A stretch of DNA of 64,000 nucleotides from positions 186,001 to 250,000 of IMG/VR virus record IMGVR_UViG_3300030329_006583; one strand, 5' to 3'. This document shows positions 3,150 to 55,092 of this stretch, piece after piece. The stretch's first letter is position 1, and each line of letters starts with the position of its first letter. A program made the position numbers and the translations under genes. The notes beneath the pieces were generated by a model, which saw only the letters and a list, made by a program, of their open reading frames with translations, was not told the origin of the DNA and ran no database searches.

Positions 3150-3230
3150 GTAACTCTCCTGTGAATGGCATGGCGGGTCTGACCATGATATAATAGGTAT
3201 GGCGATGGGGCAACAAAACCCCCACCAATC

Positions 3231-7621: not shown

Positions 7622-8431
7622 ATGACAAATTTAATACGAAAATATGTACGGCACCTTTTAAATGAAATTACCCAATTACCAAAAGAGTATTTTACCACCA
7701 TTGATAATGCTATAGCGGACTCCAAATTTTGGACGCTGCCTAATCACGAAGAAGATATTGATGAGCATGGTCTCCAAAACCAAACCCCCGCAGCGGCAAA
7801 ACTCCAGGAAGCCTTGAGTGCTGTGCTCACCAATATTGGATTAAATATGGATGTCATGATAGATAGTTACCCTGCACTGGAGGGAGCCTATCTTACCCCA
7901 AATCATCCTGCATATCCGGATAGATGGTTAATAGATGCCCGTTGGTATGTCTCTCAAACAACAGGTAAAAATACGTTAGATTTAATGATCATGACATTAG
8001 GTGAAGATTTTGATATTAATGATTTAAATCCCAAAGCATTGGTTCGCAATATTGCACAAACCATTCGCCATGAATTAGTGCATTATTCTCAAATGAAAAA
8101 ACAGAAAACCAACAAACAATTAAAAACAGATCGAGAAGCGTTTGAAGCAATGTTGGTAGATCCTAAACAAATTCCTGCCACCGATAATATTGTTGATTAT
8201 CTACGTTCCCATATTGAAATCGATGCACATGCTCATGATGCAGCTGAAGAGTTGTTAGCTGTTTATGGTGAAAAAGGGGCAGAGGATTTGTTGAGAGGTA
8301 AAATCAACCTAGGCGATCCCAAATTACCCAATGCCATTGAACATTATTATACGTACTTACCTAAAAATGATCCCACCTTAAAGCTATTTAGGAAAAAAAT
8401 GTATCAATACATCCAATCTTTCACTGCGTAG
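7622..8431 (+). CDS. HExxH metallopeptidase-like protein with a type-B leader
   Basis: N-terminal LIRKYVRHLLNE; IRHELVH plus downstream EIDA. Confidence 0.6.
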   Translation: MTNLIRKYVRHLLNEITQLPKEYFTTIDNAIADSKFWTLPNHEEDIDEHGLQNQTPAAAKLQEALSAVLTNIGLNMDVMIDSYPALEGAYLTPNHPAYPDRWLIDARWYVSQTTGKNTLDLMIMTLGEDFDINDLNPKALVRNIAQTIRHELVHYSQMKKQKTNKQLKTDREAFEAMLVDPKQIPATDNIVDYLRSHIEIDAHAHDAAEELLAVYGEKGAEDLLRGKINLGDPKLPNAIEHYYTYLPKNDPTLKLFRKKMYQYIQSFTA

Positions 8432-11703: not shown

Positions 11704-12360
11704 TTAAAGAGAGGGACTGCCTATTAGAATTTTAGTATGTGCAGACCCATCGCCAAAGCGCTTGGTATACCATCCCTTGGCTTTCTTAAAGATATCGGGT
11801 GCATTAGGATCAGGATGATCACCATGCCAATCAAAATCATCACCAGCCAAAAGGGTACGCACAGCCGATTCACTTTCAATGGCCGGGGCACCTCGTCGAA
11901 GAAGTGCATAAGCCGGCTTACCGGAAACCTCCCCCCACCAATTACCTACCCCACCTATTTCTCCGCCGGCGCGTAATTCGGCACCCTTTTCCTTATATGC
12001 TGCAGATGCAGCCTGTGACCCATCATTTGCAGCACCACCTAATTTATTACCAGCAATGTCTGGTTTACCAAATAAGGCAACATCAATCTCAGGATCCTCA
12101 TCCAGATCCTCCACCATCCAATATCGATAACGATCCAAGCTGTCGGGAGAAGTAATCTTTACATGTCCACCAATGGGTTCATAGGTAGCCTGAACGATGT
12201 CATATAATTCTTGTTTAACAAGCTCTCGTCGTTCATCCCCAGTTTGTAACATTACCCACACACCCTTAGGAAGAACACCTTCAGGTGAAACCTCGGTGCC
12301 CGTAGATGCTTGTTCCACTAGGACCTGGCGAATGAATTGTCTCAAAGTCTCTTGGGTCAC
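11704..12360 (-). CDS. hypothetical protein with a type-B-like leader
   Basis: ETLRQFIRQVLVE at the N-terminus. Confidence 0.7.
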   Translation of the reverse strand: MTQETLRQFIRQVLVEQASTGTEVSPEGVLPKGVWVMLQTGDERRELVKQELYDIVQATYEPIGGHVKITSPDSLDRYRYWMVEDLDEDPEIDVALFGKPDIAGNKLGGAANDGSQAASAAYKEKGAELRAGGEIGGVGNWWGEVSGKPAYALLRRGAPAIESESAVRTLLAGDDFDWHGDHPDPNAPDIFKKAKGWYTKRFGDGSAHTKILIGSPSL

Positions 12361-12361: not shown

Positions 12362-12955
12362 TTAATCCTCTTCTACGATGCCTGCTTCTTGTGCAATTTT
12401 TAAAACATCAGCCAGTGCCAAAGCAGCGCTGGCAGGACAATGTGTATCGGTCATTTCCATTACTGGACGAATCATCTCATAAGCTTGTGATGGCTCTAGA
12501 ATAAGGGTGTCTCCGGCACGTTTATAAGAATCTGGGCATATGGCCATTTCGGCATTTTCTTCTTTTATCATCGCAAAATCTGAAAGGATTTCTGGGTTCT
12601 CACAATGCCAATTGACATGTGCAGCATAATCGTCTATTGTAACAATTCCATCCTGATCTAGATCAAAATGGTTATAAAGTTCTTCTGGTGAAAGATTGCC
12701 ATCACCATTCGCGTCGGGTGGCCCATGAGAAGCACCATACGTTTCCGTAATCTCCAGGGTTTCTGGTTCCGGGGTTACTTGTGCGGATCCACCCGCCTCC
12801 GAGTGATCAATGGGTTCCACCAGATCATCTCCACCAGCCCAAGCATTTTCAACAGGTTCAACTTCTGCCGGTGAATCAACATCCCAATATTGGTCGGTTA
12901 AATCTTCAAATTCTTCCTTAATGATTCTTCTAAGTTGTCTTTTTGTAATTTTCAT
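12362..12955 (-). CDS. type-A leader protein with an EF-hand pair
   Basis: MKITKRQLRRIIKEE; loops DANGDGNLSPEE and DLDQDGIVTIDD; start re-assigned. Confidence 0.75.
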   Translation of the reverse strand: MKITKRQLRRIIKEEFEDLTDQYWDVDSPAEVEPVENAWAGGDDLVEPIDHSEAGGSAQVTPEPETLEITETYGASHGPPDANGDGNLSPEELYNHFDLDQDGIVTIDDYAAHVNWHCENPEILSDFAMIKEENAEMAICPDSYKRAGDTLILEPSQAYEMIRPVMEMTDTHCPASAALALADVLKIAQEAGIVEED

Positions 12956-12971
12956 TGTATTTTTCTCCGAC

Positions 12972-13280
12972 TCATATCCCAGGTGACATGATATCATCCA
13001 TCCATGTATCGCGCTCCAAGCCCTGGCGTATACCTTCAATGTACACATACAAGGCGAGCGCCTTGTCATCATCGATGCCATCTTTATACGCAGCATACTT
13101 TTCGCGAACTAGTTTGTCTATGACGCCTAGGTTACGCTCGATTTCGCGCCTTTCGCCGCCATCGCTTTTGTCACCGGTAACCGCCCGGGTCTGTGCTTCC
13201 CAATCGGTACCGAGCTGTTCACTGACTCGGGCAACCTCTTCCTTGATGATTCTTCTTAATTGCCTCTTTGTGATTTTCAT
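12972..13280 (-). CDS. type-A leader protein
   Basis: MKITKRQLRRIIKEE. Confidence 0.8.
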   Translation of the reverse strand: MKITKRQLRRIIKEEVARVSEQLGTDWEAQTRAVTGDKSDGGERREIERNLGVIDKLVREKYAAYKDGIDDDKALALYVYIEGIRQGLERDTWMDDIMSPGI

Positions 13281-13289
13281 TGTTTCTTC

Positions 13290-13586
13290 CTATCGCATGG
13301 GGTCATGCATGTGTACTCGCGTAACAGCCTCACCGACACCACCTTCACTCATATCGATCAAACCAGCCGCGATGGCTTTTACTGTCTCACGCACTGTCGA
13401 GGCCTCTACATCTTTACCGCCCTTCTCCAGGAGCTGCGCCAAAAGTTGCAGATCTTTATGGGCATCGTAAAGGCTCTTGAAAGCATCTTCGTGCACTACC
13501 ACGATGCTACGTGCGTACGCTTCCTTGAGAAACCTCTGCTTCTCTTCCTTGATGATTCTTCTTAACTGTCGTTTTGAAATTTTCAT
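13290..13586 (-). CDS. type-A leader protein
   Basis: MKISKRQLRRIIKEE. Confidence 0.8.
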   Translation of the reverse strand: MKISKRQLRRIIKEEKQRFLKEAYARSIVVVHEDAFKSLYDAHKDLQLLAQLLEKGGKDVEASTVRETVKAIAAGLIDMSEGGVGEAVTRVHMHDPMR

Positions 13587-13587
13587 A

Positions 13588-13908
13588 TTATATCACCTTG
13601 GCCCATTGACCATCGTGAAGTTTATTCTCTACTTTGTCAAAACTGCCATGAATTGCCTGCATTATTTCTTCCACTAGCACATCATAGGCTGTGTCTATCT
13701 GTAGTATCCATTCCTCCCTTGTTGACGAGCCAGCAAACATGTCCGGCTGCTGATCAAACAAAGCTTCTTGGTCCTCAGCCCAAAGGCCGGCTATATTCTC
13801 AACTGCCTCTTTAACCTTTTCCTGATAGTATGGATCGAGCTCTTCACGGAGGAGTTTGGCCCTCTCTTCTTTGATAATTCTTTTCAGTTGTCTTTTAGTT
13901 ATTTTCAT
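13588..13908 (-). CDS. type-A leader protein
   Basis: MKITKRQLKRIIKEE. Confidence 0.8.
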   Translation of the reverse strand: MKITKRQLKRIIKEERAKLLREELDPYYQEKVKEAVENIAGLWAEDQEALFDQQPDMFAGSSTREEWILQIDTAYDVLVEEIMQAIHGSFDKVENKLHDGQWAKVI

Positions 13909-13910
13909 TG

Positions 13911-14378
13911 TTACCATTCCTTACACGACCAATACCGTGCTTTTGTTTTTGGTCCTGGGTTATCACAATTGTGCCGAGCATCAAAGCTCTTTTTGGCTTT
14001 TGGATTACTCTTCCTGATCCTGGAATTCGGATCTCCAAACCTGACGACTGTTACATCGTCCTCTTTGGGGCCGTCCTTCACATATACCTTTTTCTGCTTT
14101 TTACCGTATCCGGTTTGTCCTTTACGGATGGCAGTCGGGTTATTAAGCTTTACTTTTCTGCCTTGGTATTCTGCCTCCTTTAAAGGATCACCCTCTACGC
14201 CATCATCTTCTTGTGCAGCCTTCCACGATTTCTCATCGGGATAGTCCTCATCACCTGGCTTCGCCGGCTTTTCTCCGCGCTTTCTCTTGGCATGAATATT
14301 TGCCCAGAGACCCTTCTTTTTTTCTTCTAAAAAGACTTCTCGAATAATTCCCCTGAGTTGTCGCTTGGTGACTTTCAT
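13911..14378 (-). CDS. type-A leader protein with a basic conserved phage domain
   Basis: MKVTKRQLRGIIRE; KKGLWANIHAKRKR and KSFDARHNC...ARYWSCKEW segments. Confidence 0.8.
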   Translation of the reverse strand: MKVTKRQLRGIIREVFLEEKKKGLWANIHAKRKRGEKPAKPGDEDYPDEKSWKAAQEDDGVEGDPLKEAEYQGRKVKLNNPTAIRKGQTGYGKKQKKVYVKDGPKEDDVTVVRFGDPNSRIRKSNPKAKKSFDARHNCDNPGPKTKARYWSCKEW

Positions 14379-14677
14379 AGTTCCATTTCCTGCAAGACCT
14401 GCATGACCAGCTGCTTGAAAGATTTCATTGGACCAACCCTTTTCTCATCCTCGATGCGCCAGACGATGCGCCTAACATCATAAAGAGACGCTTGAATCGC
14501 GTCTTTAATTGCACCTTCAATTGACGCTATAGGGTAGTCCGTATTTCCGCTCTCGATATCCAATGCCAGGTGATCTAAATCATCGAGCACAGTTTCCATA
14601 TCGCTAACAGACTCGCGGACAAGCTTGGCCTTTTCTTCTTTGATGATTCTTCTTAATTGGCGTTTGGTGATTTTCAT
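14375..14677 (-). CDS. type-A leader protein
   Basis: MKITKRQLRRIIKEE; start re-assigned. Confidence 0.8.
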   Translation of the reverse strand: MKITKRQLRRIIKEEKAKLVRESVSDMETVLDDLDHLALDIESGNTDYPIASIEGAIKDAIQASLYDVRRIVWRIEDEKRVGPMKSFKQLVMQVLQEMEL

Positions 14678-15354
14678 GATTTTATCCCTGTGCACAGTAT
14701 TCCATCATTATCCCACTCTCCCACCGGCCATATTTTCCGCCACTGACCTTCGAGCTCTTGTACACGCCAATCACCACCGGTGTTGTCTATAACAATCTCA
14801 TCATCTATGACGTCGACCAGGATATCGGGCCCAAATATTGGAAGTGCCAAATCGTGCACCTCCTGAGCATCCTGTTCTTGCCATGGTTCAACGTGATGGT
14901 GTGCGATGGCTTCTCTAATAATTCTCTTTAGTTGTCGTTTTGTTATTTTCATTTGTTTTCCCTCAGTTCTTCGACGCATGCCTGAGCGTTTCACCAATTC
15001 TTCCCTGTGTTCCGGATCGGGTTGCATGGCCTTAATTTCTTTATCCCTTGCTGCACGTTCCTCTGCGGCTTTTTCGTATTCTTCCTCTGCTTCCATTGCT
15101 TCATGAGCAGCGTCATATTCTTTGTCGATTTCTTTGGCTATCTGATCAGCTGTCATAGTAGCAAACATATGTTGCATGGTGTCGCCGGATGGCCTCACAC
15201 CCCACCTGTATTTGTATGCATCAGAAAACATACCAAGCAAATCATCCTTCTTTTCGGAATCCTCATCGGTAAAGGGTGCAAGAGGAGAATCAACGCCTAA
15301 CGATCGCTGTGCTTCCCTAATGATTCTTTTTAGTTTCTGTTTTGTGATTTTCAT
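14674..15354 (-). CDS. protein with two type-A leaders (N-terminal and internal at 14952)
   Basis: MKITKQKLKRIIRE, then in-frame MKITKRQLKRIIRE preceded by GAGGG. Confidence 0.8.
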   Translation of the reverse strand: MKITKQKLKRIIREAQRSLGVDSPLAPFTDEDSEKKDDLLGMFSDAYKYRWGVRPSGDTMQHMFATMTADQIAKEIDKEYDAAHEAMEAEEEYEKAAEERAARDKEIKAMQPDPEHREELVKRSGMRRRTEGKQMKITKRQLKRIIREAIAHHHVEPWQEQDAQEVHDLALPIFGPDILVDVIDDEIVIDNTGGDWRVQELEGQWRKIWPVGEWDNDGILCTGIKS

Positions 15355-15713
15355 TACATGTCCTCCAGGATTGATTCCGCCGTATCCAATGGGGCTCGTA
15401 CTTTCTCGCCTGCCAAGCCAAGATCATAGGTGAGATCTTTCAATTTGTCTATCGCCATACGAAGAGCATTGGGATTCTGATCGTAGACTACATCTTCAAA
15501 GTCAACATCAGATTCCAGATCTTCAAATGCCTCCCACCCTTTGATCAGGGCATCCACTTGCTCCTGAACCGCAGTACCTAGACTGGCATACGCCTTGGCA
15601 AAAGCGATAAGGGGATCGGAAGGAGAGTCTCCACCAAACCCAAATTGTTCATTGAGGAGCTTGGCTTTCTCTTCCTTGATGATTCTTTTCAATTGTCGTT
15701 TTGTGATTTTCAT
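15354..15713 (-). CDS. type-A leader protein
   Basis: MKITKRQLKRIIKEE. Confidence 0.8.
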   Translation of the reverse strand: MKITKRQLKRIIKEEKAKLLNEQFGFGGDSPSDPLIAFAKAYASLGTAVQEQVDALIKGWEAFEDLESDVDFEDVVYDQNPNALRMAIDKLKDLTYDLGLAGEKVRAPLDTAESILEDM

Positions 15714-15728
15714 TGTTAATTCCTATAA

Positions 15729-16094
15729 TCAGCTCGTAACATATCTCACAGTAGGCGGTGTAGCCGGAACAGCCGTACTATTTTGGGCCGCGGCAGTTAC
15801 ACACCAATGACTGAAACCTGTACTAAACGCAATCCCCTCGGGAAATGCATAACTTCTTTTTACAGATGCAGGACAAAGGAACACCATAGAAGCAGCAGTT
15901 GTCCCGGCCGTAGCGCTAGTAGCGTCAGCTAGTTTAAAATAGACGGCCGTACTATATCCTGTGTTGTCAATCTCCACCATATACAGTGTACCTGCCGCGC
16001 CTGTTGTGTTTTCTACTGCGGTGGCCGCCGCCGCTGTATCCTGAACCAATTTATTAGCTAATGGATTGCTTTGATTAGTAACTGTAACTGCCAT
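15729..16094 (-). CDS. A/T-rich beta protein, probably a virion component (no leader)
   Basis: 121 aa, Ala/Thr-rich; GGAGG SD. Confidence 0.65.
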   Translation of the reverse strand: MAVTVTNQSNPLANKLVQDTAAAATAVENTTGAAGTLYMVEIDNTGYSTAVYFKLADATSATAGTTAASMVFLCPASVKRSYAFPEGIAFSTGFSHWCVTAAAQNSTAVPATPPTVRYVTS

Positions 16095-16147
16095 AACTTA
16101 ATACCCTCCGCCGATTGTAAATAGAAACATGCTTTTTGTAATTTTCA

Positions 16148-16465
16148 CTACCCTATGCTCCCACCCGGATTTCTGCCCACTAATTCGTCCACTGTCACAA
16201 AATAGGCCTCAAGTTGTTTAAAGAAACTATTTAATCTCTCAACTTGCATCCCAAGATCCACAGCCAGTTCATCCCCCGCTTGCACACCCGGCTCACTAGG
16301 ATCTTGAAGACCATATATGCCATTTGCAATTTCCTCAATAGAAGATGCAATACCATCTAGTTCTGCCATCATTGAACCTTCAGTGGAAGCCATAGACTGT
16401 TCTTTTATCAACTTTGTTTTTTCTTCTTTTATGATTCTTCTAAGCTGTCTTTTTGTGATTTTCAT
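16148..16465 (-). CDS. type-A leader protein
   Basis: MKITKRQLRRIIKEE; start re-assigned. Confidence 0.8.
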   Translation of the reverse strand: MKITKRQLRRIIKEEKTKLIKEQSMASTEGSMMAELDGIASSIEEIANGIYGLQDPSEPGVQAGDELAVDLGMQVERLNSFFKQLEAYFVTVDELVGRNPGGSIG

Positions 16466-16466
16466 T

Positions 16467-16679
16467 TTATAGCTCGCCATGTTTAAAGTCTTCCAGAGCC
16501 TCTAAGGCATCGGCACCAGTCATCCAATTTCCCACCAGATAATTAACCAGCTGTTCAGCTGAAACGCCCATCATTTCGAGTTCTTCTAAAATTGCAAAAG
16601 CAGCCTGGCGATTCTCGTTTAAGAGCTTCGACTTCTCTTCCTTAATGATTCTTTTCAATTGTCGTTTTGTAATTTTCAT
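16467..16679 (-). CDS. type-A leader protein
   Basis: MKITKRQLKRIIKEE. Confidence 0.8.
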   Translation of the reverse strand: MKITKRQLKRIIKEEKSKLLNENRQAAFAILEELEMMGVSAEQLVNYLVGNWMTGADALEALEDFKHGEL

Positions 16680-16703
16680 CTTAGTTTCCTTTATTAATAT
16701 TCA

Positions 16704-17048
16704 TTAATCAGCAGTGTGACGATAATAATCCACTTTTACCGACATCCCATCATCCGTCACTGTGTGAGTGTACACCCCTGAAAGTGCGGCATACGGATCC
16801 TTCTTTTGTTGTATTTCAAGATTATTGAAAACATCAACATCACCTTGAGGGATGGGCTGCCCGTCTTTGCGAACATATACCTGTGTACTCCTCACATCAC
16901 CACGATTACGACCATACGGATAACTTACCGAACCACTACCAACAGTCTCATAATGTTGATCCAATAAATCCCGATGTTGAGACCATATATTTTCCTGCAA
17001 AAGTGCTTCCTTAATTATACCTCGCAACTGAGGGATTGTGATTAACAT
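16704..17048 (-). CDS. type-A-like leader protein
   Basis: MLITIPQLRGIIKEALLQE; AGGAG SD. Confidence 0.7.
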   Translation of the reverse strand: MLITIPQLRGIIKEALLQENIWSQHRDLLDQHYETVGSGSVSYPYGRNRGDVRSTQVYVRKDGQPIPQGDVDVFNNLEIQQKKDPYAALSGVYTHTVTDDGMSVKVDYYRHTAD

Positions 17049-17050
17049 TA

Positions 17051-17554
17051 TCAGCTCCTGCGATCCCGAGTGCCCCATCTCCCATAGGAATCATCACGCC
17101 TATCACGATAACTCTGTTTTTTGCCTGACTCAGCACCGGTACGCATACCCAATGATTCATCCTCTTTATCATCATATCCCTGGTGGCCTTCTTCCATATC
17201 GTCCTCTGCCAGGTTTTCTTCAACCAATTGGCGAATTCGTTGGCGTAAAGCGGCCTGCTTATTTAATTTCGCTTTTTCTTCTTTTACTATTTGGCGCAGC
17301 TGCCTCCTACCCAAGGCTCGGCCTCGGCGGCGACGAGACTCATGTTTTTCTCTTTCATGTTCCAGCTCTTCTTCGTGAGCGCGCTCCATCTCTTCCCGAT
17401 CATCCTTAATGTCTTTCTCAAGATTATCAATATGATCCTTGTCATCATCAATGTTTTTACGAAGATTATCCAGCTCATCACTGATGCTATCCTCGGCAAG
17501 GCGCCGAACTTCTTCCTTTACGATTTTTCTCAATTGTCTCTTTGTGATTCTCAT
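17051..17554 (-). CDS. type-A leader protein, highly charged coiled coil
   Basis: MRITKRQLRKIVKEE plus internal RRQLRQIVKEE. Confidence 0.75.
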   Translation of the reverse strand: MRITKRQLRKIVKEEVRRLAEDSISDELDNLRKNIDDDKDHIDNLEKDIKDDREEMERAHEEELEHEREKHESRRRRGRALGRRQLRQIVKEEKAKLNKQAALRQRIRQLVEENLAEDDMEEGHQGYDDKEDESLGMRTGAESGKKQSYRDRRDDSYGRWGTRDRRS

Positions 17555-17844
17555 CCTCTCATTCTCCTTGCCATTCCCAGCTGTTGTCCCACATTTTGCG
17601 CATCAACAGTATCCCCTTGATCCAAATCCTGTTGGCGCTGTTGTGTTAATTTCTTAACTTGATCCGCCGAGGCTTGTTCCTCGTCGACATCATCTCCACT
17701 TAATGAAGTATCCATTCCCATGTCACCCACGGCAAGAAAACCTTCATCATCATCACTTTTCTCCTGGGGGGCTGTATAACCCACAACCTGTTCCCGCAGA
17801 ATCTCCCTTATTACATTTCGCAATCTGTACTCTGTAACTCTCAT
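17551..17844 (-). CDS. type-A-like leader protein
   Basis: MRVTEYRLRNVIREILREQ. Confidence 0.7.
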   Translation of the reverse strand: MRVTEYRLRNVIREILREQVVGYTAPQEKSDDDEGFLAVGDMGMDTSLSGDDVDEEQASADQVKKLTQQRQQDLDQGDTVDAQNVGQQLGMARRMRG

Positions 17845-18152
17845 GCAGTTGTCACCCTACCTATTAACATCATACTGTCACCCTCCGTATCGCCACCTAT
17901 AATTACGGAGCGTATCTTTTGGCACAATCCCTTTACCCATTCTTTCAAACCCAATCGTTTTGTGGGTACCGGAATTTGCATACATTGTTTGGTATAGGCT
18001 TTCATAATAAAACGGGCGGCCAAACGAGAACCATATTTTTTAGCAATTACATGAACAATTTGTTGGGTTTTTGGGTTTAACTCAACAAACATCTCACGTA
18101 ATTCTGACCTGGTTGGCAATTGCCTGTTTTTCATTTTATTCACCGTAATCAC
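17841..18152 (-). CDS. hypothetical basic protein
   Basis: 103-aa ORF inside the array, no clear leader. Confidence 0.5.
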   Translation of the reverse strand: MITVNKMKNRQLPTRSELREMFVELNPKTQQIVHVIAKKYGSRLAARFIMKAYTKQCMQIPVPTKRLGLKEWVKGLCQKIRSVIIGGDTEGDSMMLIGRVTTA

Positions 18153-18387
18153 TTATCAACTCGCTGGCATTTTGTTTGCGGGCCCTATCTGCTGCGGCTT
18201 GTAAAAAATCAGCCATAGTAATACCAGCTAACGCCGGTGCTTGTTCCACCGAGATGTCATCGCGTACTAGTCGAATGGCCTCATCTAAATACATGTGGAA
18301 AATATCGGTAACATGATCCCGAGCTGCCTCAGTGTTAAATTGTTCATGAATTATTTTTTGAAGTTGTTTACGAGTAATTTTCATCAT
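18136..18387 (-). CDS. type-A leader protein
   Basis: MMKITRKQLQKIIHEQ; GAGG SD. Confidence 0.75.
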   Translation of the reverse strand: MMKITRKQLQKIIHEQFNTEAARDHVTDIFHMYLDEAIRLVRDDISVEQAPALAGITMADFLQAAADRARKQNASELISDYGE

Positions 18388-18728: not shown

Positions 18729-19559
18729 TTACGCCGGCTTACCAAACCCATCTTCACTTGCATTAACAATGTGGTGATTGAGTTCATAGGCATGATTTAA
18801 TATTTCATCCGCATATCTCTCTATGCGGTTCACCAAAGATACGGGAACACCGCGTTCAAATAATCCGGTTTTCCCCAATCTCTCTACCACCGCATCTGTT
18901 ACATCATTGACCCGACGTGAATGTAACATATCGGATTCTAAATTTTCCTTTAATAAACCCTTTATGACACTTCGCAATAAGGATTCATTTTGACTATCTT
19001 CTACAACCTCCAATATAGCCCTCCAGTGACTTGGGCTAATACCGGAAGGTATTCCACCACTTGCAGATTGTAAAGCCATGAGTGCATCCCCGTATTTCTT
19101 TATTTGCCGTGGACTGGGATTGCTGAGAAGGTTGTGCAACATATCTGCCAATTTTACCTTTAGCGATGCCGAATCTCCCAATAAGGACAATACATAATCC
19201 TGATACGGCACATTCTTTTCATGGGTCAATTGACGTACCACACGTAATGCCTCCCGCCCGGATTGCACATCCCCGAATGAAGCGGTGATCATTGAGCTCA
19301 GATCCTCTGAGGATTTTATATTCCCTAATTCAATTGCATCTTCGAGGGTATCATGTAAAAGAGCAATTGCGCATAGTGTTTGATCCTCTGGGTAGTATTT
19401 TTCTATTATCTTAGCAACGGCCATGGGATGCTCAATATAGGGTTCCCCACTGCGCCTAGTTTGTCCTAGGTGTGCTAGCTGTGCCGTTGCCATGGCATCA
19501 TCAACATCGGCGCTAGCCATACCACAAATTTCACTAATATATTGGCGCAATAGTTTCAT
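18729..19559 (-). CDS. HD-domain hydrolase of the RelA/SpoT hydrolase (Mesh1/SAH) type, with a type-B leader
   Basis: AH.GQ.R.SGEPYIEHP, ALLHDTLED, VKLADMLHNL; N-terminal MKLLRQYISE. Confidence 0.8.
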   Translation of the reverse strand: MKLLRQYISEICGMASADVDDAMATAQLAHLGQTRRSGEPYIEHPMAVAKIIEKYYPEDQTLCAIALLHDTLEDAIELGNIKSSEDLSSMITASFGDVQSGREALRVVRQLTHEKNVPYQDYVLSLLGDSASLKVKLADMLHNLLSNPSPRQIKKYGDALMALQSASGGIPSGISPSHWRAILEVVEDSQNESLLRSVIKGLLKENLESDMLHSRRVNDVTDAVVERLGKTGLFERGVPVSLVNRIERYADEILNHAYELNHHIVNASEDGFGKPA

Positions 19560-20581
19560 CCTTCAATCTCCGGTATACCTGTTATCCTGTGACCGGGTCG
19601 GACCCCATTCCTTTTAAACCAACCGCGGTTCATCTCCAATGCGCATCGGGCAGGGCCATTCGAATAAGTATGTTCCTCCGTGAAGGGTTCCATGTCCTCA
19701 ATGTTTAAAATATACCCATCATCATCCGTATACGCAATAGACAAGGGGAGAGGTGTGTTCCTCATCCAGAAAGATCTTTGATTAGAATCTGGAAAAACAA
19801 ACAGCATCCCGCTATCTTCCCCCATCCCGCGACGGAACATTAGGCCCTGTTGACGAGTGGCAGGGGTTGAAGCAATCTCAGTATCGACCTGTATGCCATT
19901 TACCATCACCCCCTCAGACAATGTTGTAGTTGTTTTGGTTGCGTACCTGACCTCACCCTCATAGATGAACTCATCAACCTGATTAAACCCCAACCCCTGC
20001 GCTTCTCCCAATATCTCAACTTCAGCCATGCACTCATTTCGAGCACCACCCACCAAATCAGCGCCATTCCACTTTGGTAATTCATCTTCTAAATCGGGAA
20101 CCCAAAAACCATAGTCTTCAAGCTCGTCAAACAGAAGCTCGCTAACACCAATCGCTTCTACGTCTTCTTCTTCCAGCTCCTGGATATCTCGGATGTCTTT
20201 ATCAATCATGTACTTAACAATCTCTACAATCGATGATCGATCAAAACACACACTTGAATCCATCACGTCTCGAAAGAAACCGTAGCCCTTATCGAAGAAA
20301 GTTGATTTTGATAGCAATTCATCGTATGTCTCTTCATCCCAATCCAACTTTTCAAAGTAAAAGTCTTTCAAGGCAGACTCTGATATCATACCGAGCGTGT
20401 CTTCACCGTTATAAAGAAATAGCACACGGGAATAATTCTCTGCTGCCTCACGAAGCATATCACCGATATCAAAAGGAGTGTTGCTTTCGTACTCAGGCTG
20501 GATATCTACTACGACAAGACTGCCTTTCGATCCCTGCTCTTGCTCTAGCAATACCCTTATGTATTCGCGGAGTAGTTTCAT
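19556..20581 (-). CDS. fusion of type-B leader, cysteine-hydrolase-like domain and DUF192 domain
   Basis: LVVVDIQPEY...VGGARNEC; C-terminal GLMFR...GMLFVF...FWMRNTPLPLSI. Confidence 0.7.
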   Translation of the reverse strand: MKLLREYIRVLLEQEQGSKGSLVVVDIQPEYESNTPFDIGDMLREAAENYSRVLFLYNGEDTLGMISESALKDFYFEKLDWDEETYDELLSKSTFFDKGYGFFRDVMDSSVCFDRSSIVEIVKYMIDKDIRDIQELEEEDVEAIGVSELLFDELEDYGFWVPDLEDELPKWNGADLVGGARNECMAEVEILGEAQGLGFNQVDEFIYEGEVRYATKTTTTLSEGVMVNGIQVDTEIASTPATRQQGLMFRRGMGEDSGMLFVFPDSNQRSFWMRNTPLPLSIAYTDDDGYILNIEDMEPFTEEHTYSNGPARCALEMNRGWFKRNGVRPGHRITGIPEIEG

Positions 20582-21021
20582 TTTTCTGGAACCCCCAATA
20601 GCTTTTCACATTCATCAGCCAAAATACTCAATTTTAGGGCGGTCAACCTGACATGTTCAATGAAACCCCTTTGGTGAAATGTTTTCCATGCCTGGTGATT
20701 ATCTGATTTCATGCGGTCAAAAATCTTATCGATACCAAGGGCATTACACAAAGAAAAGGAAAACTGAAATGCTGCCTCGCTGTAATCTTCATCCCTAAGT
20801 GCCAACAGACCTTTCTCTGCCGATCTTTTTACTTCACCATATAAAAGTGATACACATTCTGGATTATTTTTAATTTCGCAGGTAAGATTAGGCGAACATG
20901 CCCTGTACTCTAGTTCTCCAAAATACTCGATGGTTACCTGCGTATTGCCTTCCAGGTAATTAGTTTTGGGAGTGCAGGAACAAAAAAGTAGCAACAGCGT
21001 TATTAGTAAAGCCCTTATCAT
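20578..21021 (-). CDS. putative lipoprotein
   Basis: MIRALLITLLLLFCSC lipobox-like N-terminus. Confidence 0.55.
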   Translation of the reverse strand: MIRALLITLLLLFCSCTPKTNYLEGNTQVTIEYFGELEYRACSPNLTCEIKNNPECVSLLYGEVKRSAEKGLLALRDEDYSEAAFQFSFSLCNALGIDKIFDRMKSDNHQAWKTFHQRGFIEHVRLTALKLSILADECEKLLGVPEK

Positions 21022-21048
21022 CTATTAATCCTCCCTGCCAGTGGGTTT

Positions 21049-21402
21049 TCACCATGGCCCGTGTTGACCCGTCTTCAAACAGTTAACCACCGTTTCCTCG
21101 GCAGTATATTCCCGTCGGATTTCGGGCTGGAACATGTCATAATAAATATCACGTGGAATTCCTTCTGGCTTGGTATAACTTGACTGCCAGTCAAACACAG
21201 TGTCACCTTTCTCCACCCACGCATGATCCACAGTTTCCCCAGAGAACTTATCAGTGACCTGCCCATGCACCACCTTAAACTTGGAAAGATCGCTGAATTC
21301 TTCATCTGTGGTACCCTGGGCCATCTTTATTGCGTGTGGATAGCATTGGCCGATTGCTTTTTCCACTAGTAAGGCTCTTATGTACTCACGCAATAGATTC
21401 AC
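21049..21402 (-). CDS. type-B leader protein with Cys/His motifs
   Basis: MNLLREYIRALLVE; GQCY, VVHG and HAWVE suggest a papain/transglutaminase-like core. Confidence 0.65.
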   Translation of the reverse strand: MNLLREYIRALLVEKAIGQCYPHAIKMAQGTTDEEFSDLSKFKVVHGQVTDKFSGETVDHAWVEKGDTVFDWQSSYTKPEGIPRDIYYDMFQPEIRREYTAEETVVNCLKTGQHGPW

Positions 21403-22007
21403 TTTATCACCCCGGCCGAAGCAAAATCTACAATGTTAATCCCCAGCCCTTCGGTTTCTTCAGACACAACAGACATCAAGTTATCCGGAACCATTATCTC
21501 CTTAATTGACCAATTGTCAACCAAGGCTTCGTTAGCAGAACCAGGAATAAAATCTTTGGAATCAAGAACAAGAAAACCGGGTGACAACAACTCATCCATG
21601 TCATGATAGGTACCTTTGTTTACCCCAGAAGACTGTGCCCTATGTTCTCCTCCTACCCTAGCCGCCGTGGACCCATATCCCGTATTTAGATCCTCATTTG
21701 ATAATAGGGTTATCCTTCCATCGATAACCAACCCGACCATAGAAAGCTCATAGCTTTCTGGGTTTATCTGCCCTGGCAAATAAGCTCGAACACTCAATTC
21801 ATTTCTGGAACCTACGTTAATTGTTTGCATTAATTTTTGTGGCCTAACCCAATGAACTGTTACTAGCGAGTCAAGAAACTGTTGGTCAGCATTCTTTGCG
21901 TAATACTGCTTTATTTCCCGACCGGTTTTTAGAGCTAACAAATCACGCTCATCTGCTTCGGCAGTTTCGACCAACAATTCCCTTATATATTCACGTAGTA
22001 ATTTCAT
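21399..22007 (-). CDS. type-B leader protein
   Basis: MKLLREYIRELLVE. Confidence 0.75.
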   Translation of the reverse strand: MKLLREYIRELLVETAEADERDLLALKTGREIKQYYAKNADQQFLDSLVTVHWVRPQKLMQTINVGSRNELSVRAYLPGQINPESYELSMVGLVIDGRITLLSNEDLNTGYGSTAARVGGEHRAQSSGVNKGTYHDMDELLSPGFLVLDSKDFIPGSANEALVDNWSIKEIMVPDNLMSVVSEETEGLGINIVDFASAGVIK

Positions 22008-22291
22008 TTCTTGCCCCTGATCTTAACCCATGTGCCCCACATTAACGGAACAGCTAACCAATGCAAGCATAATAACCATGCTGCAGGAGCACCGGCATAA
22101 AAAGATGGATGAACTGTCTTTCCCAAGAATATGAAGAGAGCGGGAAACCCAACGTCTTCAATAATTTCCCACAACAAGAATATGACAACGAATGCCAGAC
22201 CGTTCTCTTTGAGAAAGCCTTTTAATTTCTCAATAGAAAAATGCTCAAATTTATGAACTAGGCGATCTTTTGTCCACTGAAATAACTTCAT
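22004..22291 (-). CDS. 2-TM membrane protein
   Basis: Hydrophobic segments; overlaps both neighbours. Confidence 0.6.
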   Translation of the reverse strand: MKLFQWTKDRLVHKFEHFSIEKLKGFLKENGLAFVVIFLLWEIIEDVGFPALFIFLGKTVHPSFYAGAPAAWLLCLHWLAVPLMWGTWVKIRGKK

Positions 22292-23139
22292 TAATAATAT
22301 TTTGCCCCCATAACATTAACATCAGGATACTGCTTTTCCATCTTTTCTTTCAGATGGCCTATCGCGGGGGTCATCATCTTCCCAAAGTCAATAATGCTAG
22401 CAGGCTTTGCATACATGCTGAAAAACTTGTCAACAAGCCGGGTCGCTACTTTTTGGCCACCTTTATCTCCCCGGGTTTTCATATAATCAATATACCAGTA
22501 ATCCGGCCCTCGTTGGTGATAATCTAAAAACCCGATGATGCAAACGTCGCTCACCCCTGGGATTATCTCATCTAGCACTGGTTTTTTAAGTTTTCTTCTG
22601 CCACCCTTTGTACGTTTTCGCCACCTTTCAATTTCTGCGAAATAGTGATCATGAGGCCTCGGGGGATCTGTGACAGAAGAATCACATAAGGCCAAACGTT
22701 TCACATTGCCAGAACTGTGATATTGGAGCGGAGAATCAACTTCACGGAACTCAATTCCCTCTGTCAAAATTCCCCTGACAACTTGACGTACAGACTCTTT
22801 CGCATGGGGTGTATCGTTAATCGTTTTAAGCTTGGCCATGTCAACACCAGAAATGCCGGTCAGATCAGCAATCAGATCATCTATGGTATAACCATCACCT
22901 CGCTCAAACCGAACCACCAGATCGGCCATCTGCTTTCCTTCAGGTGCAGGACGAAGCGAAGCATCCTGGCGCACCGTTATCACATCCGGCAGTCCCCGAA
23001 TCTTTGTGAGAATGTGTTCCATGGTAGGCTTATCAGGAGAATCAATGCTGACTCGCACTGTTACGGAGAGATCATCTAACACTGGTTCAGCAGCCGTTTG
23101 TTCCAATAAGCCCCTTATGTACTCGCGTAGTAGTTTCAT
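22291..23139 (-). CDS. type-B leader protein with a GNAT-like C-terminus
   Basis: MKLLREYIRGLLEQ; GFLDY...YIDYMKTR...GQKVATRLV. Confidence 0.65.
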   Translation of the reverse strand: MKLLREYIRGLLEQTAAEPVLDDLSVTVRVSIDSPDKPTMEHILTKIRGLPDVITVRQDASLRPAPEGKQMADLVVRFERGDGYTIDDLIADLTGISGVDMAKLKTINDTPHAKESVRQVVRGILTEGIEFREVDSPLQYHSSGNVKRLALCDSSVTDPPRPHDHYFAEIERWRKRTKGGRRKLKKPVLDEIIPGVSDVCIIGFLDYHQRGPDYWYIDYMKTRGDKGGQKVATRLVDKFFSMYAKPASIIDFGKMMTPAIGHLKEKMEKQYPDVNVMGAKYY

Positions 23140-24218
23140 TACCATTCCCCCGCTTGTTTGGCCCTGGTACGCATGTGTTCCGGAGTCAATGTGTTAGGAA
23201 ATGTCTTAACTACATCGACTGCACCCTTCGATAAAAAGATCGCCTGCTGTGGTTCATTTTTGTGAATCAAGCCGGTACTGCGATCATAAAAGGCGTCCAT
23301 ACCGATCCCTCTCAATATGGCGTTCCACTTTCCAATAGGGGCAGCTGCCTTATCACCGGCACCTGGACTCCCACCTGCTATCATCTTTGTCAATAGCCAT
23401 ATGAGATCAATAGGCCTCTTTCGGGCTTTCTTTTGTGCCTCTTCATATATGGCAGAATTTCTCATGATCGCCGTTATGGGATTAATTCCTTGGGCCACAG
23501 CCTCCTCTACCTTCTGCACCTCATCTTCAAATGAGGTACCTGATAAACCAAATCTCTCCACGGTTTCCTGTGTATACAATTGTTTCATCGCATCATATTG
23601 CTCTGAAAGTGTGAACTCAGGTGACGTCACCAAATTTGCTCCTGCGCTGGTTTTTAATATTGAAATGAAAGGTTGTTGTGTAGCAAAAGGCAATCGTTCA
23701 GAACCTTTAGGCGAAGTAAGTTGTTGAACTGTTTTGGGAAAGAGGGGGTAAGCATAAATTCCGGCGGGTGTGTTATAATCAGAGCCGGGGTTGACACCCA
23801 CCTTATTAATGGCTGTGAAAGTAATATAATATTCCGGCTTTTCCGATGAATTCCCATCGGCATATGATTGCAATTCATTTTCAAGGGTAGGAAGTTCCAC
23901 ACCTTCTTTATCGGCACGACGGGCCTCAGCCAATGTCATTTGTATATACTTGCGCAAGAGCTTCTCATTCATCTTTCCTGTCATCCTCTCCAACATGTCC
24001 ATGGCCTCTTCCCTGGTTACAAAGTAATCACCCTCAATGGTGTAGGGTTTCTCTGAGCCATCAGGTAGAATATAACCTGTACCCACATAAAACCCGTTGG
24101 AATTTTGCATCACCTGTAATTCTGTGGGACCAAATCCTGGCCGGTGCGGCTTGGGCGACCCTGCCTTTTGAAGTAAAGAATTTCTAAACCACTTAATTTG
24201 AAAACCCTTTGGCCACAT
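23139..24218 (-). CDS. hypothetical protein with a type-B leader at 23972 (possible true start)
   Basis: Internal MNEKLLRKYIQMTLAE; KVGVNP.S.YNTPAGIYAYP. Confidence 0.6.
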   Translation of the reverse strand: MWPKGFQIKWFRNSLLQKAGSPKPHRPGFGPTELQVMQNSNGFYVGTGYILPDGSEKPYTIEGDYFVTREEAMDMLERMTGKMNEKLLRKYIQMTLAEARRADKEGVELPTLENELQSYADGNSSEKPEYYITFTAINKVGVNPGSDYNTPAGIYAYPLFPKTVQQLTSPKGSERLPFATQQPFISILKTSAGANLVTSPEFTLSEQYDAMKQLYTQETVERFGLSGTSFEDEVQKVEEAVAQGINPITAIMRNSAIYEEAQKKARKRPIDLIWLLTKMIAGGSPGAGDKAAAPIGKWNAILRGIGMDAFYDRSTGLIHKNEPQQAIFLSKGAVDVVKTFPNTLTPEHMRTRAKQAGEW

Positions 24219-35292: not shown

Positions 35293-35457
35293 TTATTTTA
35301 TCATTCCTAACTTTCGTAAATAGTCTCTTATTTTATTACGATACTTTTCTTCCATTCCGGGTTGGTCTAACATGAGATTATTTTCATCAGCCTGTTCATA
35401 AGGGGAACTTAATTCATGACGTACCGATTCCCTGACAAAACGGCGTAAATGTTTCAT
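35293..35457 (-). CDS. small protein with a type-B-like leader
   Basis: MKHLRRFVRES; start re-assigned. Confidence 0.55.
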   Translation of the reverse strand: MKHLRRFVRESVRHELSSPYEQADENNLMLDQPGMEEKYRNKIRDYLRKLGMIK

Positions 35458-41910: not shown

Positions 41911-42006
41911 GATCTCTTCCTCCATTCATTTCCACGGTAAAGTTTTTTCTTACAATGTCAATATAGTCATCGATGTGTCGTTGAACACCCTTGCAATGCA
42001 TTTTTT

Positions 42007-49444: not shown

Positions 49445-49636
49445 TTAGTCGTGAAAATCTTCCGTATAAATGAAGGCAACCTTATTAATGACATAATGAA
49501 TATCTCCCCGTGGGCCCCACTTAAAAAATGGTATCATTCCACGTAACATCACACATATTCCGCTACCCATTAAAAACAGTCCCACCTTACAATGCAGTTT
49601 TAACTTTTTATAATATTCATTCATGGGGATGCTCAT
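49445..49636 (-). CDS. small hypothetical protein
   Basis: 63 aa; overlaps the upstream stop. Confidence 0.45.
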   Translation of the reverse strand: MSIPMNEYYKKLKLHCKVGLFLMGSGICVMLRGMIPFFKWGPRGDIHYVINKVAFIYTEDFHD

Positions 49637-50856
49637 TTTTTCTTGAGATCATATGAATTTCTGAAATCATTTAAAACATCTAACAATGTTTTGCCTTGTG
49701 CTGTTTTGGCCAATGATCCCTCGTCAATCCCAAATTCTGCCTGTAAAGCCGCTAATTCTTCCTGTAACGATGATTGTAAATTCATCAGGGAATCCTGAAG
49801 TTGTTGACGCGTAGTATCTGTCGATTGTTGAAAGATTTTTTCAGCAGCGGATTTAAGTAATTCATCCTCATTAACATCGGGTAATGCCTCGTCGGGATTA
49901 AGTTTTTTACCTTCTTCTTGTGCTAGCGCCCTAATTAATTCATCTCGTTGTTCCGGATTACTTAAAAATTCCTTAGCGGATTTTTCCAGTGAAGAACGTA
50001 ATGTATTTGGGTTTGCGCCCCCCAGATCCATGCCTGCCTTGGAAGCCTTTTGGAGCCCTTCTATATATTCATCCAGAGTTTTGCTATTCATCATTTCACC
50101 TATAAGTTGCCTTGAAGGCATATAAATTTCATCTAAATTTTCCAATGCATCCCTAAAACCCTCAAGGAGCTGATCAGAAGCATCCTTGAATTCGTCCAGG
50201 ATACCCATTTCTTCCATCACATCGATGATGTCAGATTGCGATATTGCACCCCCTTGTTCCAGCAAGAGATCGTTGGTTGGATAATAAGATTCTGCCACCC
50301 CAAAAAAGAACACTTTTTTTAGTGCATTAAATGCAGTTCCTATTAAACCGGTTGGATCCTTTATTTTATCTCCGCTCTCCGCGGATTCTTTTTCAGAAGG
50401 TTTACCAAATCCAGCCTCACCAAAAAAATCTCTCACAGCATCTTTGGAATCCCAGCCTTGTTGAAGTGCCGACGCCGCCAAATACCCACCTGGATTCAAT
50501 AAAAACGCTGCTAATTTAAGATCCTCTGTATCAGCGCCTAATTTTTGGCGCAAATCAGCATGTTCCTGTTTAAGGGTTTTCACCCTTTCCTTGTAATTGG
50601 TTCTTAATTCCTTTAATTTTTTAGGATCAATAGTAACCAAAACATCAAATAAAAATTTAGTGGAAGTTAGTACATCCTTAAACCCCAGCTTAGCTGCCTT
50701 GAATACATCGCTAAAAGGTTCAACAAAAATTTTACTAAATTCGCTGGTTGACATTGCAGCAAATTCATCTTCCCTCAACAGAACCTTGGCATCTGTTTCG
50801 TGTAAGATATTGCGAATATATTTTCTTACCAACTTTTCCTGGGTAATTGCTTTCAT
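49633..50856 (-). CDS. helical protein with a type-B leader
   Basis: KLVRKYIRNILHE; 407 aa. Confidence 0.7.
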   Translation of the reverse strand: MKAITQEKLVRKYIRNILHETDAKVLLREDEFAAMSTSEFSKIFVEPFSDVFKAAKLGFKDVLTSTKFLFDVLVTIDPKKLKELRTNYKERVKTLKQEHADLRQKLGADTEDLKLAAFLLNPGGYLAASALQQGWDSKDAVRDFFGEAGFGKPSEKESAESGDKIKDPTGLIGTAFNALKKVFFFGVAESYYPTNDLLLEQGGAISQSDIIDVMEEMGILDEFKDASDQLLEGFRDALENLDEIYMPSRQLIGEMMNSKTLDEYIEGLQKASKAGMDLGGANPNTLRSSLEKSAKEFLSNPEQRDELIRALAQEEGKKLNPDEALPDVNEDELLKSAAEKIFQQSTDTTRQQLQDSLMNLQSSLQEELAALQAEFGIDEGSLAKTAQGKTLLDVLNDFRNSYDLKKK

Positions 50857-52599: not shown

Positions 52600-53754
52600 T
52601 TACACCTTGATTCTATCAATAATTTGGGGGGAGCTCATAGCGAGATCCTTGTATAATTTTTTCATGACAGCCTTGGAGATGTCTCCAATCTCTTGTTTGG
52701 TCGCCTTGTCCTTTAAGATCTTCTTCACTTCATCCTGGATTGTCTTCACAAAGTTGGTACCCACCACCTTGTCAATCTCTTTTTTTGCTTGCTTACGGGC
52801 GATTTTCTCGATCTCTTTCTTATCGGTTTTGGTGAGCTCTTCAAATAATAAGGATTCACGTACTAATGCACCTATAATATCCTTAATCTCACTTATTTCA
52901 GGTGACGAAGTTGAAGATAAAAATTGATACAAGCAAGCAAATGGATTGATCTTCCCAGCGCCCTCCATGGATTCCCCGGCCAAGGCTGAAAAAGAAGAAT
53001 TAGGGGGATTAAAAGTTGTTATTTTTAATTCAGGTTGAATTTCATAAAACTGACTACGAGTCGAGACCCTGATCTTAAAATTTCCCGAACCAGCCACCAT
53101 GGGAATGCTGGAATTTAAACCACAGAATTCCAAGGCACCTTTAAGGCCCAAAGGATCTTGATCGCCAATTGTATAAAAATCATCCCCGGCCTGAAGATAG
53201 TGGGCAGCGGCCGCCTTACCGATAAGATAATGCTGGGTTATAAGATTACCTACATCCACATTTTCTTCGTTAACAAAATAACGGCTCCCTCTTTCGTTAA
53301 CGAAATTTCTCATCACCTCTAGAGGAACCGCCGCCGGATCCTTTAAGCCACCTTTGGTTGTGGGAATCTTGATAATGGTGTCCGGAGATACACCCATATA
53401 TACCTTGAGGTCATCAATAAATTGTGATGCAGTAGATGAATTATTCGCTAAATCCACAGCGGCATCTGCCACGGGTGATGTAGCATTAGAAGCCCAGGTC
53501 GAACCGTCATAATAAATTCGAGGATTGGCTAAGTTGTCTTTGTGGCCCATTTTAACTTCTACGTAAGTGGATCCCACTCCAGGAACCTCTACCAAAACAT
53601 CCGGATATCTTACATCTCCGCCAGCTGCAGAAGCCTTAAATATTTCACGACCTGCATTATTAATTGCGCCGGCGACCTCGGCCTCAAAAGCATCAGAGGC
53701 TTTAGATTCCATTAATAGCACTTGAACCCATTTACGCAATAAACGATCATTCAT
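52600..53754 (-). CDS. PD-(D/E)xK nuclease-like protein with a type-B leader
   Basis: RLLRKWVQVLLME; FEAEVA...YPDV...YVEVK. Confidence 0.55.
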   Translation of the reverse strand: MNDRLLRKWVQVLLMESKASDAFEAEVAGAINNAGREIFKASAAGGDVRYPDVLVEVPGVGSTYVEVKMGHKDNLANPRIYYDGSTWASNATSPVADAAVDLANNSSTASQFIDDLKVYMGVSPDTIIKIPTTKGGLKDPAAVPLEVMRNFVNERGSRYFVNEENVDVGNLITQHYLIGKAAAAHYLQAGDDFYTIGDQDPLGLKGALEFCGLNSSIPMVAGSGNFKIRVSTRSQFYEIQPELKITTFNPPNSSFSALAGESMEGAGKINPFACLYQFLSSTSSPEISEIKDIIGALVRESLLFEELTKTDKKEIEKIARKQAKKEIDKVVGTNFVKTIQDEVKKILKDKATKQEIGDISKAVMKKLYKDLAMSSPQIIDRIKV

Positions 53755-55063: not shown

Positions 55064-55092
55064 ATTATACCATATCTCATGTAATTTTGCAT
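55064..55092 (-). promoter_or_regulatory. recurring promoter motif
   Basis: ATGCAAA-N16-TATAAT with TGG before the -10. Confidence 0.6.

Follow-up and report, generated by a model that had tools for sequence, protein, structure and literature searches.

The closest described counterparts of the protein leaders analysed here are the capsid-targeting sequences (CTS) of bacteriophage T4, present on IPI, IPII and IPIII and as the propeptide of Alt; T4 gp21 cuts after L/I-X-E (PMC9026906). We analysed a stretch of 64,000 nucleotides (the window), which corresponds to positions 186001-250000 of the 267-kb viral contig IMGVR_UViG_3300030329_006583, and in which two classes of short N-terminal leaders, type A and type B, recur on proteins of unrelated folds. 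The source is an uncultured marine T4-like phage of the jumbo group, whose genome was also independently assembled from Tara Oceans data and is present in ENA as ERZ909129 k127_238470 and ERZ2772574 NODE_6; the window genes, about 125 open reading frames (ORFs) in total, are nearly all on the minus strand. With a probability of roughly 0.6, we interpret the leaders as an expanded, two-class, T4-style capsid-targeting propeptide system of uncultured marine T4-like jumbo phages. The leader helix would dock its carrier protein onto the scaffolding core while the prohead assembles, a Glu-specific prohead protease of the gp21 family would cut after the terminal [LI]-x-E, freeing the cargo inside the head, and the freed cargo would then be available for ejection with the DNA. 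Core binding, cleavage, presence in the virion, ejection and a role of the cargo in the host would each follow by analogy.

As with the T4 CTS, the leaders are short N-terminal helices that start with MK, end in L/I-x-E and appear portable to unrelated cargo; likewise, they are carried by variable small proteins and an enzyme, in phages whose head module is T4-like and whose protease belongs to the gp21 family (here in relatives). They differ in their length, 14 residues as opposed to 10-19 in T4, in forming two consensus classes, and in the number of carriers, which is about 30 in 64 kb compared to about four in T4. Many of the cargoes are enzyme-like, with sizes of 100-700 aa, and the leader is kept at fusion junctions with a Glu site on each side. 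Additionally, type B resembles the N-terminus of the protease itself in one marine group, and the system is known here from sequence alone.

The giant phages phiKZ, 201phi2-1 and SPN3US offer a second parallel since they contain dozens of head proteins, including paralogue families, which are cleaved after Glu by a diverged gp21 homologue and ejected (PMC9026906); head, inner-body and ejection proteins are all among those processed. Their processing sites are, however, S/A/G-X-E, and their propeptides vary in length and share no leader, in contrast to the near-invariant 14-mer found here; moreover, the lineage studied here encodes a factor of sigma-70 type together with a T4-like set of gp23, gp20 and gp18. 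A third parallel is that of polyvalent proteins (Iyer et al. 2017, PMC5512222), with overlapping ART-PolyVal, P-loop nucleotide kinase 3 (Ploopntkinase3), GNAT and peptidase-fold domains, a predicted delivery with the DNA, and domain shuffling and fusion in varied combinations (PMC5512222). The effector-domain repertoire is indeed shared, and here includes ART-PolyVal, Ploopntkinase3, Zeta_toxin/AAA_33, HD_4, RNase_T, U-box, GNAT-like and transglutaminase-fold domains. Nevertheless, polyvalent proteins hold 2-15 disparate domains per polypeptide, whereas here most leader genes encode a single module with its own leader; two array genes (19556-20581 and 22291-23139) have two domains, and metagenomic fusions reach 2-4 modules. 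Separation of the modules would here be carried out by the head protease at the Glu sites flanking the leader, and not by an in-built peptidase. No MuF, portal-fusion or MPTase markers appeared in the Pfam matches of the window proteins or of 95 leader-bearing representatives. Short N-terminal helices that send unrelated enzymes into a protein shell also occur in bacterial microcompartments (BMC), whose encapsulation peptides are uncleaved amphipathic helices of ca. 18 residues that bind BMC shell proteins; the Glu-site logic seen here is absent there, and no BMC shell proteins were found in a Pfam scan of selected window ORFs.

Similarity searches with the window DNA, or with type A and type B proteins, retrieved no close relatives in cultured phages, and comparison with PHROGs and Pfam left most cargo without a family. 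A full-text literature search for the motif strings gave no match, and literature searches returned no description of such leaders in marine T4-like phages.

A recurrent leader at gene starts

The type B leader is M-[KN]-L-L-R-E-Y-I-R-x-L-L-x-E, 14 residues with an amphipathic helix pattern, and the type A leader is MKITKRQLRRIIKE; hydrophobic residues occupy leader positions 3, 4, 7, 8, 11 and 12. Type B is borne by six of eight consecutive minus-strand genes between 18729 and 24218, as follows:

18729..19559, minus strand: type B gene with a shortened leader, MKLLRQYISE, and an I-S-E site at residue 10 (B14 profile, 16.5 bits); the cargo is a SpoT/Rel-type HD (p)ppGpp-hydrolase-like domain (HD_4, 6.5e-08; phrog_990; SpoT/Rel hydrolase domains in PDB, 3e-12)
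19556..20581, minus strand: type B gene, leader MKLLREYIRVLLEQ (B14 profile, 30.9 bits); the cargo has an N-terminal domain at about residues 18-225, given a family match by no tool used, followed by DUF192 at residues 233-334 (1.7e-31)
20578..21021, minus strand: leaderless gene within the array, with a hydrophobic, lipoprotein-like N-terminus and no family match
21049..21402, minus strand: type B gene with a GTG start, (M)NLLREYIRALLVE (B14 profile, 34.4 bits); the cargo is a small Cys-His protein (AIGQCYPHA ... DHAWVE) with a YunG-like transglutaminase fold
21399..22007, minus strand: type B gene, leader MKLLREYIRELLVE (32.6 bits), with a 188-aa cargo and no family match
22004..22291, minus strand: leaderless gene within the array, a small hydrophobic protein with no family match
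22291..23139, minus strand: type B gene, leader MKLLREYIRGLLEQ (32.5 bits), with a ferredoxin/ACT-like domain at residues 24-94, a degenerate internal leader at about 116-127 (VRQVVRGILTE) and a GNAT-like domain at 129-282
23139..24218, minus strand: ORF with a type B variant, MNEKLLRKYIQMTLAE, in frame at 23972; either translation begins there (277 aa) or the leader is internal, behind an 82-aa N-terminal extension

The first-pass annotation had listed six type B starts, and the motif indeed lies directly after the start codon in all of them (19559, 20581, 21402, 22007, 23139 and 23972); its six variants (7622, 12360, 35457, 50856, 53754 and 55364/55373) are likewise present. Among its cargo calls, we recovered the HD domain at 19559 (HD_4) and DUF192 at the C-terminus of the protein starting at 20581, while the GNAT-like assignment at 23139 draws on weak fold matches, source names and Pfam matches of some homologues.

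We evaluated the recurrence of the leader with a loose 13-residue regular expression covering both types, using 40 triplet shuffles of the window as a control. The window contains 25 matches, against a mean of 0.375 and a maximum of 2 in the shuffles, and all 25 are within 7 codons (1-7) of a start codon; when weaker variants are included, about 30 of the ca. 125 window ORFs have a type A or type B leader. Across 55 loci, with 203 matches in all, the motif was directly after the start codon (residue 1-2) in 179. Likewise, a type B profile built from 60 N-termini and scored against 1.84 billion cluster representatives retrieved 134 of them at E<=1e-3, nearly all matching from residue 1 to about 28, and with a very tight consensus, M[KNR]LLREYIRELLTE. 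The recurrence of the leader is thus far from chance and, judging from its sequence, a 14-residue leader at the extreme N-terminus fits the short propeptide of a T4-type CTS.

The conservation of a short stretch at the 5' end of genes might also result from a DNA or RNA element, such as a translation-initiation signal or a recombination cassette. There are grounds for considering it: T-even phages have hyperplastic IP loci that share CTS-coding DNA, and a review mentions CTS-like sequences in related phages. However, window copies of the leader use different codons for 47% (type A) and 52% (type B) of identical residue pairs, and identity at third codon positions is 0.50-0.52 versus 0.78-0.85 at positions 1 and 2. 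Besides, identity in the 30 nt upstream of the leaders is just 0.28-0.31, and the motif is kept at internal junctions lacking a start codon. Synonymous codons differ, third positions diverge and the upstream DNA is unrelated, so that selection acts on the leader peptide; the codon analysis leads us to reject the DNA-level element, to which we assign almost no probability. Ten housekeeping or metabolic proteins of the window, identified by Pfam, have no leader, indicating that this is not a general gene-start feature of the genome. On these comparisons, the leader behaves as a portable N-terminal module under peptide-level selection.

The distribution of the two classes was bimodal, with 66 pure B, 27 pure A and few intermediates; the distinct type B consensus proposed from the window therefore holds. 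Both classes align position by position and have in common the hydrophobic pattern and the terminal L/I-x-E, in agreement with the likeness in helical periodicity and terminal Glu noted in the first-pass annotation. Its suggestion that type A sits on acidic proteins failed to discriminate between the classes, because the median isoelectric point of the remainder of the protein is 5.0 for type A and 5.1 for type B. The notion of type B as an enzyme class fared only in part: the sequence split and a difference in protein size are real, but the same GNAT-like cargo occurs mostly with B leaders and also with A-like leaders (P0031, P0007). Since this cargo carries either, cargo class is not strictly tied to leader class.

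Exact DNA patterns for MKLLREYIR/MNLLREYIR were found in about 35 IMG/VR contigs, mostly of 45-290 kb, while the MKITKRQL pattern appeared in at least 120 stretches and that of MKITKRQLRRII in 83; with the regular expression, type A was found in 113 of the fetched loci and type B in about 30. Type A is thus the widespread and probably the older class, and type B is, to judge from its matches, an innovation confined to one clade. The exact 12-residue type A DNA pattern was also found in two contigs labelled as a giant-virus metagenome-assembled genome, L203 and L254 (IMGVR_UViG_GVMAG-S-1030632-100), which probably reflects faulty binning or the presence of a phage contig in that bin.

Terminal glutamate, fusion junctions and cargo

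The end of the leader is its most regular part. All 77 type B leaders have L or I at position 12; of the 39 type A leaders, 36 have I there and three have V. Glu occupies position 14 in 73 of the 77 type B and 38 of the 39 type A leaders. About 95% of the leaders end in [LI]-x-E and would therefore carry the motif cleaved by T4 gp21.

The behaviour of the leader in fusion proteins is informative. In more than 100 metagenomic homologues of the GNAT-like cargo, the leader lies immediately before the start of the domain, G-[IV]-E-F-R-E; it is at residue 1 in 170-aa single-domain proteins, and internal, at the junction, in multidomain ones. We collected 30 non-redundant internal type B leaders, each of which directly precedes a recognisable cargo module. 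Met precedes 3 of the 30; among the remaining 27, there are 21 in which Glu stands in place of the initiator Met (background 0.06) and is followed by S/N/G/T/A. A hydrophobic residue is found at P3, two before this Glu, in about 18 of these 21, according to our own count from the listed contexts. From the front Glu and the hydrophobic P3, internal leaders are bracketed by two hydrophobic-x-E sites. In an AlphaFold2 model of the product of 22291-23139, the leader helix (residues 2-13) has a predicted local distance difference test score (pLDDT) of about 60 and the linker (14-22) of less than 50; the internal leader reaches about 64 compared with more than 90 for the GNAT-like core, and Foldseek comparison of the model with PDB gave weak GNAT and ACT-like matches only. 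The low scores of leader and linker relative to the core suggest that the leader is not part of a folded domain in the model.

Second in-frame type A leaders are also present in 14674-15354 (at 14952) and in 17051-17554 (at 17314). The two-leader ORFs of the window (these two, 22291-23139 and 23139-24218) resemble stop-less fusions of neighbouring leader+cargo genes, or polyprotein-like units.

These features bear on two further explanations. The leader could be a self-association or structural helix, such as a short coiled coil, spread by domain shuffling and with no role in sorting: its hydrophobic positions are typical of packing helices, and it is kept at fusion junctions, abutting the GNAT-like domain. 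Oligomerisation would not, however, need an invariant Glu or a strict N-terminal placement, nor would it account for the same 14 residues on more than 100 unrelated cargo clusters; in addition, the leader is modelled with lower confidence than the cargo core and cargo homologues work without it in other phages, all of which makes this explanation improbable. We likewise hold improbable that the leader is a tag for timed degradation or processing, an N-terminal helix recognised by a host or phage protease (e.g. of ClpXP type) that would eliminate or activate the carriers at a fixed stage, without packaging. Its Met-basic-hydrophobic start is loosely like N-terminal ClpX recognition motifs, and Glu-flanked junctions would fit polyprotein processing in general; yet there is no protease candidate except the gp21 homologues of relatives, specificity for Glu is that of prohead proteases (PMC9026906), and the head-module context described below favours assembly.

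The cargo itself is diverse. Behind the leader we found unrelated folds, including a SpoT/Rel-type HD domain, a DUF192 protein, a transglutaminase-fold Cys-His protein and a ferredoxin-like plus GNAT-like protein, which rules out common descent of the whole leader-bearing proteins. Cargo homologues outside have no leader, as is the case of gp61 from mycobacteriophage Barnyard, matched by the cargo of 21049-21402 (9e-5). This natural spread, over unrelated folds and more than 100 cargo clusters, fits the portability of a T4-type CTS. In a census of the 95 leader-bearing representatives, Pfam recognised few families: Zeta_toxin/AAA_33/P-loop kinase 3, U-box/zf-Nse, RNase_T and HD_4, together with RNase_H_2, ADH_N, helicase core and ART-PolyVal. 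The identifiable cargo is therefore enzyme- or effector-like by family assignment and, as such, the census fits the idea of an injected enzyme kit without proving it. The proposal that type B sits mostly on larger, enzyme-like proteins was thus borne out for the identifiable cargo and for size, with a median of 204 aa versus 117 aa for type A. One type B protein bears a U-box/zf-Nse (E3-ligase-like) domain and another an ART-PolyVal domain, both unusual as phage cargo.

Head-module context and the packaging interpretation

Using T4 genes (NC_000866) as queries against the fetched loci, we found that type A arrays adjoin T4-like genes for TerL, portal, gp21, major capsid protein (MCP), sheath and tube in about 30 loci. 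They are located directly after sheath and tube in L151, L158, L166, L179, L218 and L240, after the MCP in L152/L257, and near TerL, portal and gp21 in L176 and others. In jumbo relatives, the head module has the order TerL, portal, a 280-aa protein, gp21, an MSLNW-type protein, a small core-like protein, a 580-aa scaffold-like protein and MCP. A single genome, IMGVR_UViG_3300007770_001284 (254,743 bp), combines a gp21 head module with type A genes and an array of type B genes (MNLLREYIRALLTE... among them), and also holds orthologues of window genes 148-633, 17551-17844 and 12362-13096. Since it shares these orthologues, the window phage belongs to a T4-like jumbo group encoding a gp21-family protease.

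The N-terminus of the protease also recalls the leaders. T4 gp21, gp22, gp24 and gp67 start with short helices ending in L/I-x-E, and the N-terminus of gp21 fits its own cleavage logo and may be a targeting propeptide (PMC9026906). The gp21 homologue of L176 (466-1071) belongs to PF03420, and more than 100 of its best 120 relatives start with MKLLREYYELCEGG...DLLTE; T4 gp21 starts with MNEPQLLIE, and those of jumbo phages with ...LKLLTEW..., ...LRLLQEW... or ...LKLLTEF.... The PF03420 N-terminus of an abundant marine T4-like group is identical to type B over the first seven residues (MKLLREY). This protease (at least 8000 proteins; P0253-P0372) was seen to start with MKLLREYYELCEGGVCQDLLTE. 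The first-pass annotation had considered type B closer in style to T4 than type A; in fact, MKTYQEFIAE of IPII/IPIII (NC_000866) shares 5 of 10 residues with type B and also ends in L/I-x-E. The link to T4 is stronger than could be known from the window letters, given the T4-like lineage and the gp21-family protease of its relatives.

The same context can be confronted with another form of docking, in which the leader would recruit proteins to a non-capsid hub, such as the phage chaperones (Hsp70, DnaJ, Cpn60) or a multi-enzyme body, with no need for cleavage or packaging. Several observations agree with it: the leader looks like an amphipathic docking helix, is predicted to be detached from the cargo fold and resembles BMC encapsulation peptides, the window encodes Hsp70, DnaJ, Cpn60 and peptide deformylase, and type B arrays are away from structural genes. 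Nevertheless, it leaves without account the near-invariant terminal Glu in L/I-x-E, the second Glu site before internal leaders, the type A genes inside head and tail modules and the MKLLREY start of gp21; as no shell or hub gene was identified, we regard a hub as unlikely.

Several results weigh against a capsid-targeting role. Neither the gp21 gene nor the head module of this genome turned up in the window or in the ca. 40 kb of flanking sequence covered on the 267-kb contig. Walking with exact proteins extended about 30 kb leftwards and 8 kb rightwards and revealed no head genes; IMG/VR searches with a sheath alignment and an MCP query returned, among the matches listed, other T4-like contigs only and none from the head module of this contig; a gp21 query in a large protein set gave at least 8000 matches, and the gp21 of this genome was not located among those listed; and scans with type A patterns returned only the known regions of this contig. 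Furthermore, in this clade no structural genes lie next to the type B arrays. The type B profile did not match gp21 N-termini significantly (E 0.11), their likeness being a post hoc identity of seven residues in a different T4-like group, and a conserved head-core protein matches the type A profile weakly (E 0.08-4); we have accordingly downgraded both the type B-gp21 and the type A-core likeness, which are retained as suggestive. An amphipathic helix that simply continues could also give internal leaders their hydrophobic P3 and polar flanks. A type A protein directly upstream of TerL in L195, L209 and L162, at the place expected for the small terminase, would not be packaged and is a possible counter-example. 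The T4 late promoter TATAAATA was not enriched, and scans for sigma-70 promoters and terminators gave no informative signal. Finally, with leaders on about one quarter of the window genes, a single head would have a great deal to accommodate.

The protein at the small-terminase position has 148 aa, MKITKRQLHKIILEE, overlaps the start of TerL (L195, 4071-4517; L209, 1969-2415; L162, 5022-5468) and gave no family match.

Within the capsid-targeting interpretation, the two classes might constitute a two-letter prohead sorting code, with type B copying the propeptide of gp21 and type A that of a core protein, so that A and B would load onto different core partners. Modules of the type 'Glu site - leader - Glu site - cargo' could then be strung together or split at will, as in a combinatorial polyprotein. 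This extension is tentative, and we consider it possible but rather doubtful.

If the leaders do target the capsid, an N-terminal 14-mer ending in L/I-x-E would be a sequence rule by which the packaged, and probably injected, proteins could be recognised in a large, abundant group of marine T4-like phages that are uncultured. With clustering at 50% identity, the leader is borne by at least 134 type B cargo clusters, and type A is far more widespread. The HD alarmone-hydrolase-like, GNAT-like, ART, P-loop kinase, nuclease, U-box and papain-fold peptidase cargoes would then be candidate early counter-defence or takeover factors, almost all of them without known function. Glu-flanked junction leaders would show how modular effector genes can fuse and split without loss of delivery and, as done with the T4 CTS, a short portable tag could serve to load foreign proteins into phage heads. 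Should the sorting code also be true, the injected effector sets of hundreds of uncultured marine T4-like phages could be read from their sequences.

Other features of the window and its relatives

Apart from the type B array, the window contains the following leader genes and leaderless genes:

7622..8431, plus strand: type B variant MTNLIRKYVRHLLNE, the sole one on this strand (12.7 bits)
11704..12360, minus strand: type B variant with a GTG start, (M)TQETLRQFIRQVLVE
12362..18387, minus strand: array of about 15 type A leader genes (MKITKRQLRRIIKE...)
15729-16094: leaderless gene embedded in the type A array
35293..35457, minus strand: small ORF with variant leader MKHLRRFVRESVRHE
49633..50856, minus strand: 407-aa protein with the leader 7 residues in from the start, MKAITQEKLVRKYIRNILHE
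52600..53754, minus strand: 384-aa protein with variant leader MNDRLLRKWVQVLLME
55092..55373, minus strand: 93-aa protein with variant leader M(EIM)DNIRLRHMIRQILQE
34321-34797 and 34802-35242, minus strand: two tandem leaderless paralogues with an MSLNW start
24232-24940: IscA and IscU, leaderless
25705-26742: GMP reductase/IMPDH-family enzyme, leaderless
30805-31839: DnaJ, leaderless
31843-33312: phosphoenolpyruvate carboxykinase (PEPCK), leaderless
33324-34247: UvdE, leaderless
40030-41925: Hsp70, leaderless
42007-42639: peptide deformylase, leaderless
43725-44507: sigma-70-type factor, leaderless
44814-46424: Cpn60, leaderless

The MSLNW paralogues are homologous (E 6e-22 to L309) to the gene that directly follows gp21 in related jumbo head modules (L309, L259 and L260); in the window, they stand apart from any recognised head gene. 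In related jumbo contigs, the tube gene is also preceded by a tandem pair of diverged sheath (gp18-like) genes, each encoding about 1000 aa (L309, 15304-21564; L259, 16286-21957). In addition, the genome encodes three MopE-type metal-binding repeat proteins with a lipoprotein-like N-terminus, of 713, 801 and 563 aa, one of them in the window (35474-37615) and two in L338 (5230-7635 and 12547-14238).

Other T4-like jumbo contigs (L006-L031) encode distant homologues of the N-terminal domain of 19556-20581 in the vicinity of sheath or portal genes. These homologues start with their own lineage-specific MK...helix...E leaders, such as MKLRKLIKTTIREYLNE or MKLSKIIKEE, which suggests that leaders co-evolve with each lineage.

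Lastly, the cultured Flavobacterium phage vB_FspM_immuto (L386, NC_055915.1), whose head module is T4-like, carries N-termini resembling type A on gp080 (MKKSQLRQIIKEA; 3188-3946), upstream of TerL, and on gp072 (MKKSQIVKAVQEVLEE; 13355-13576), between portal and protease, and is a possible experimental model.

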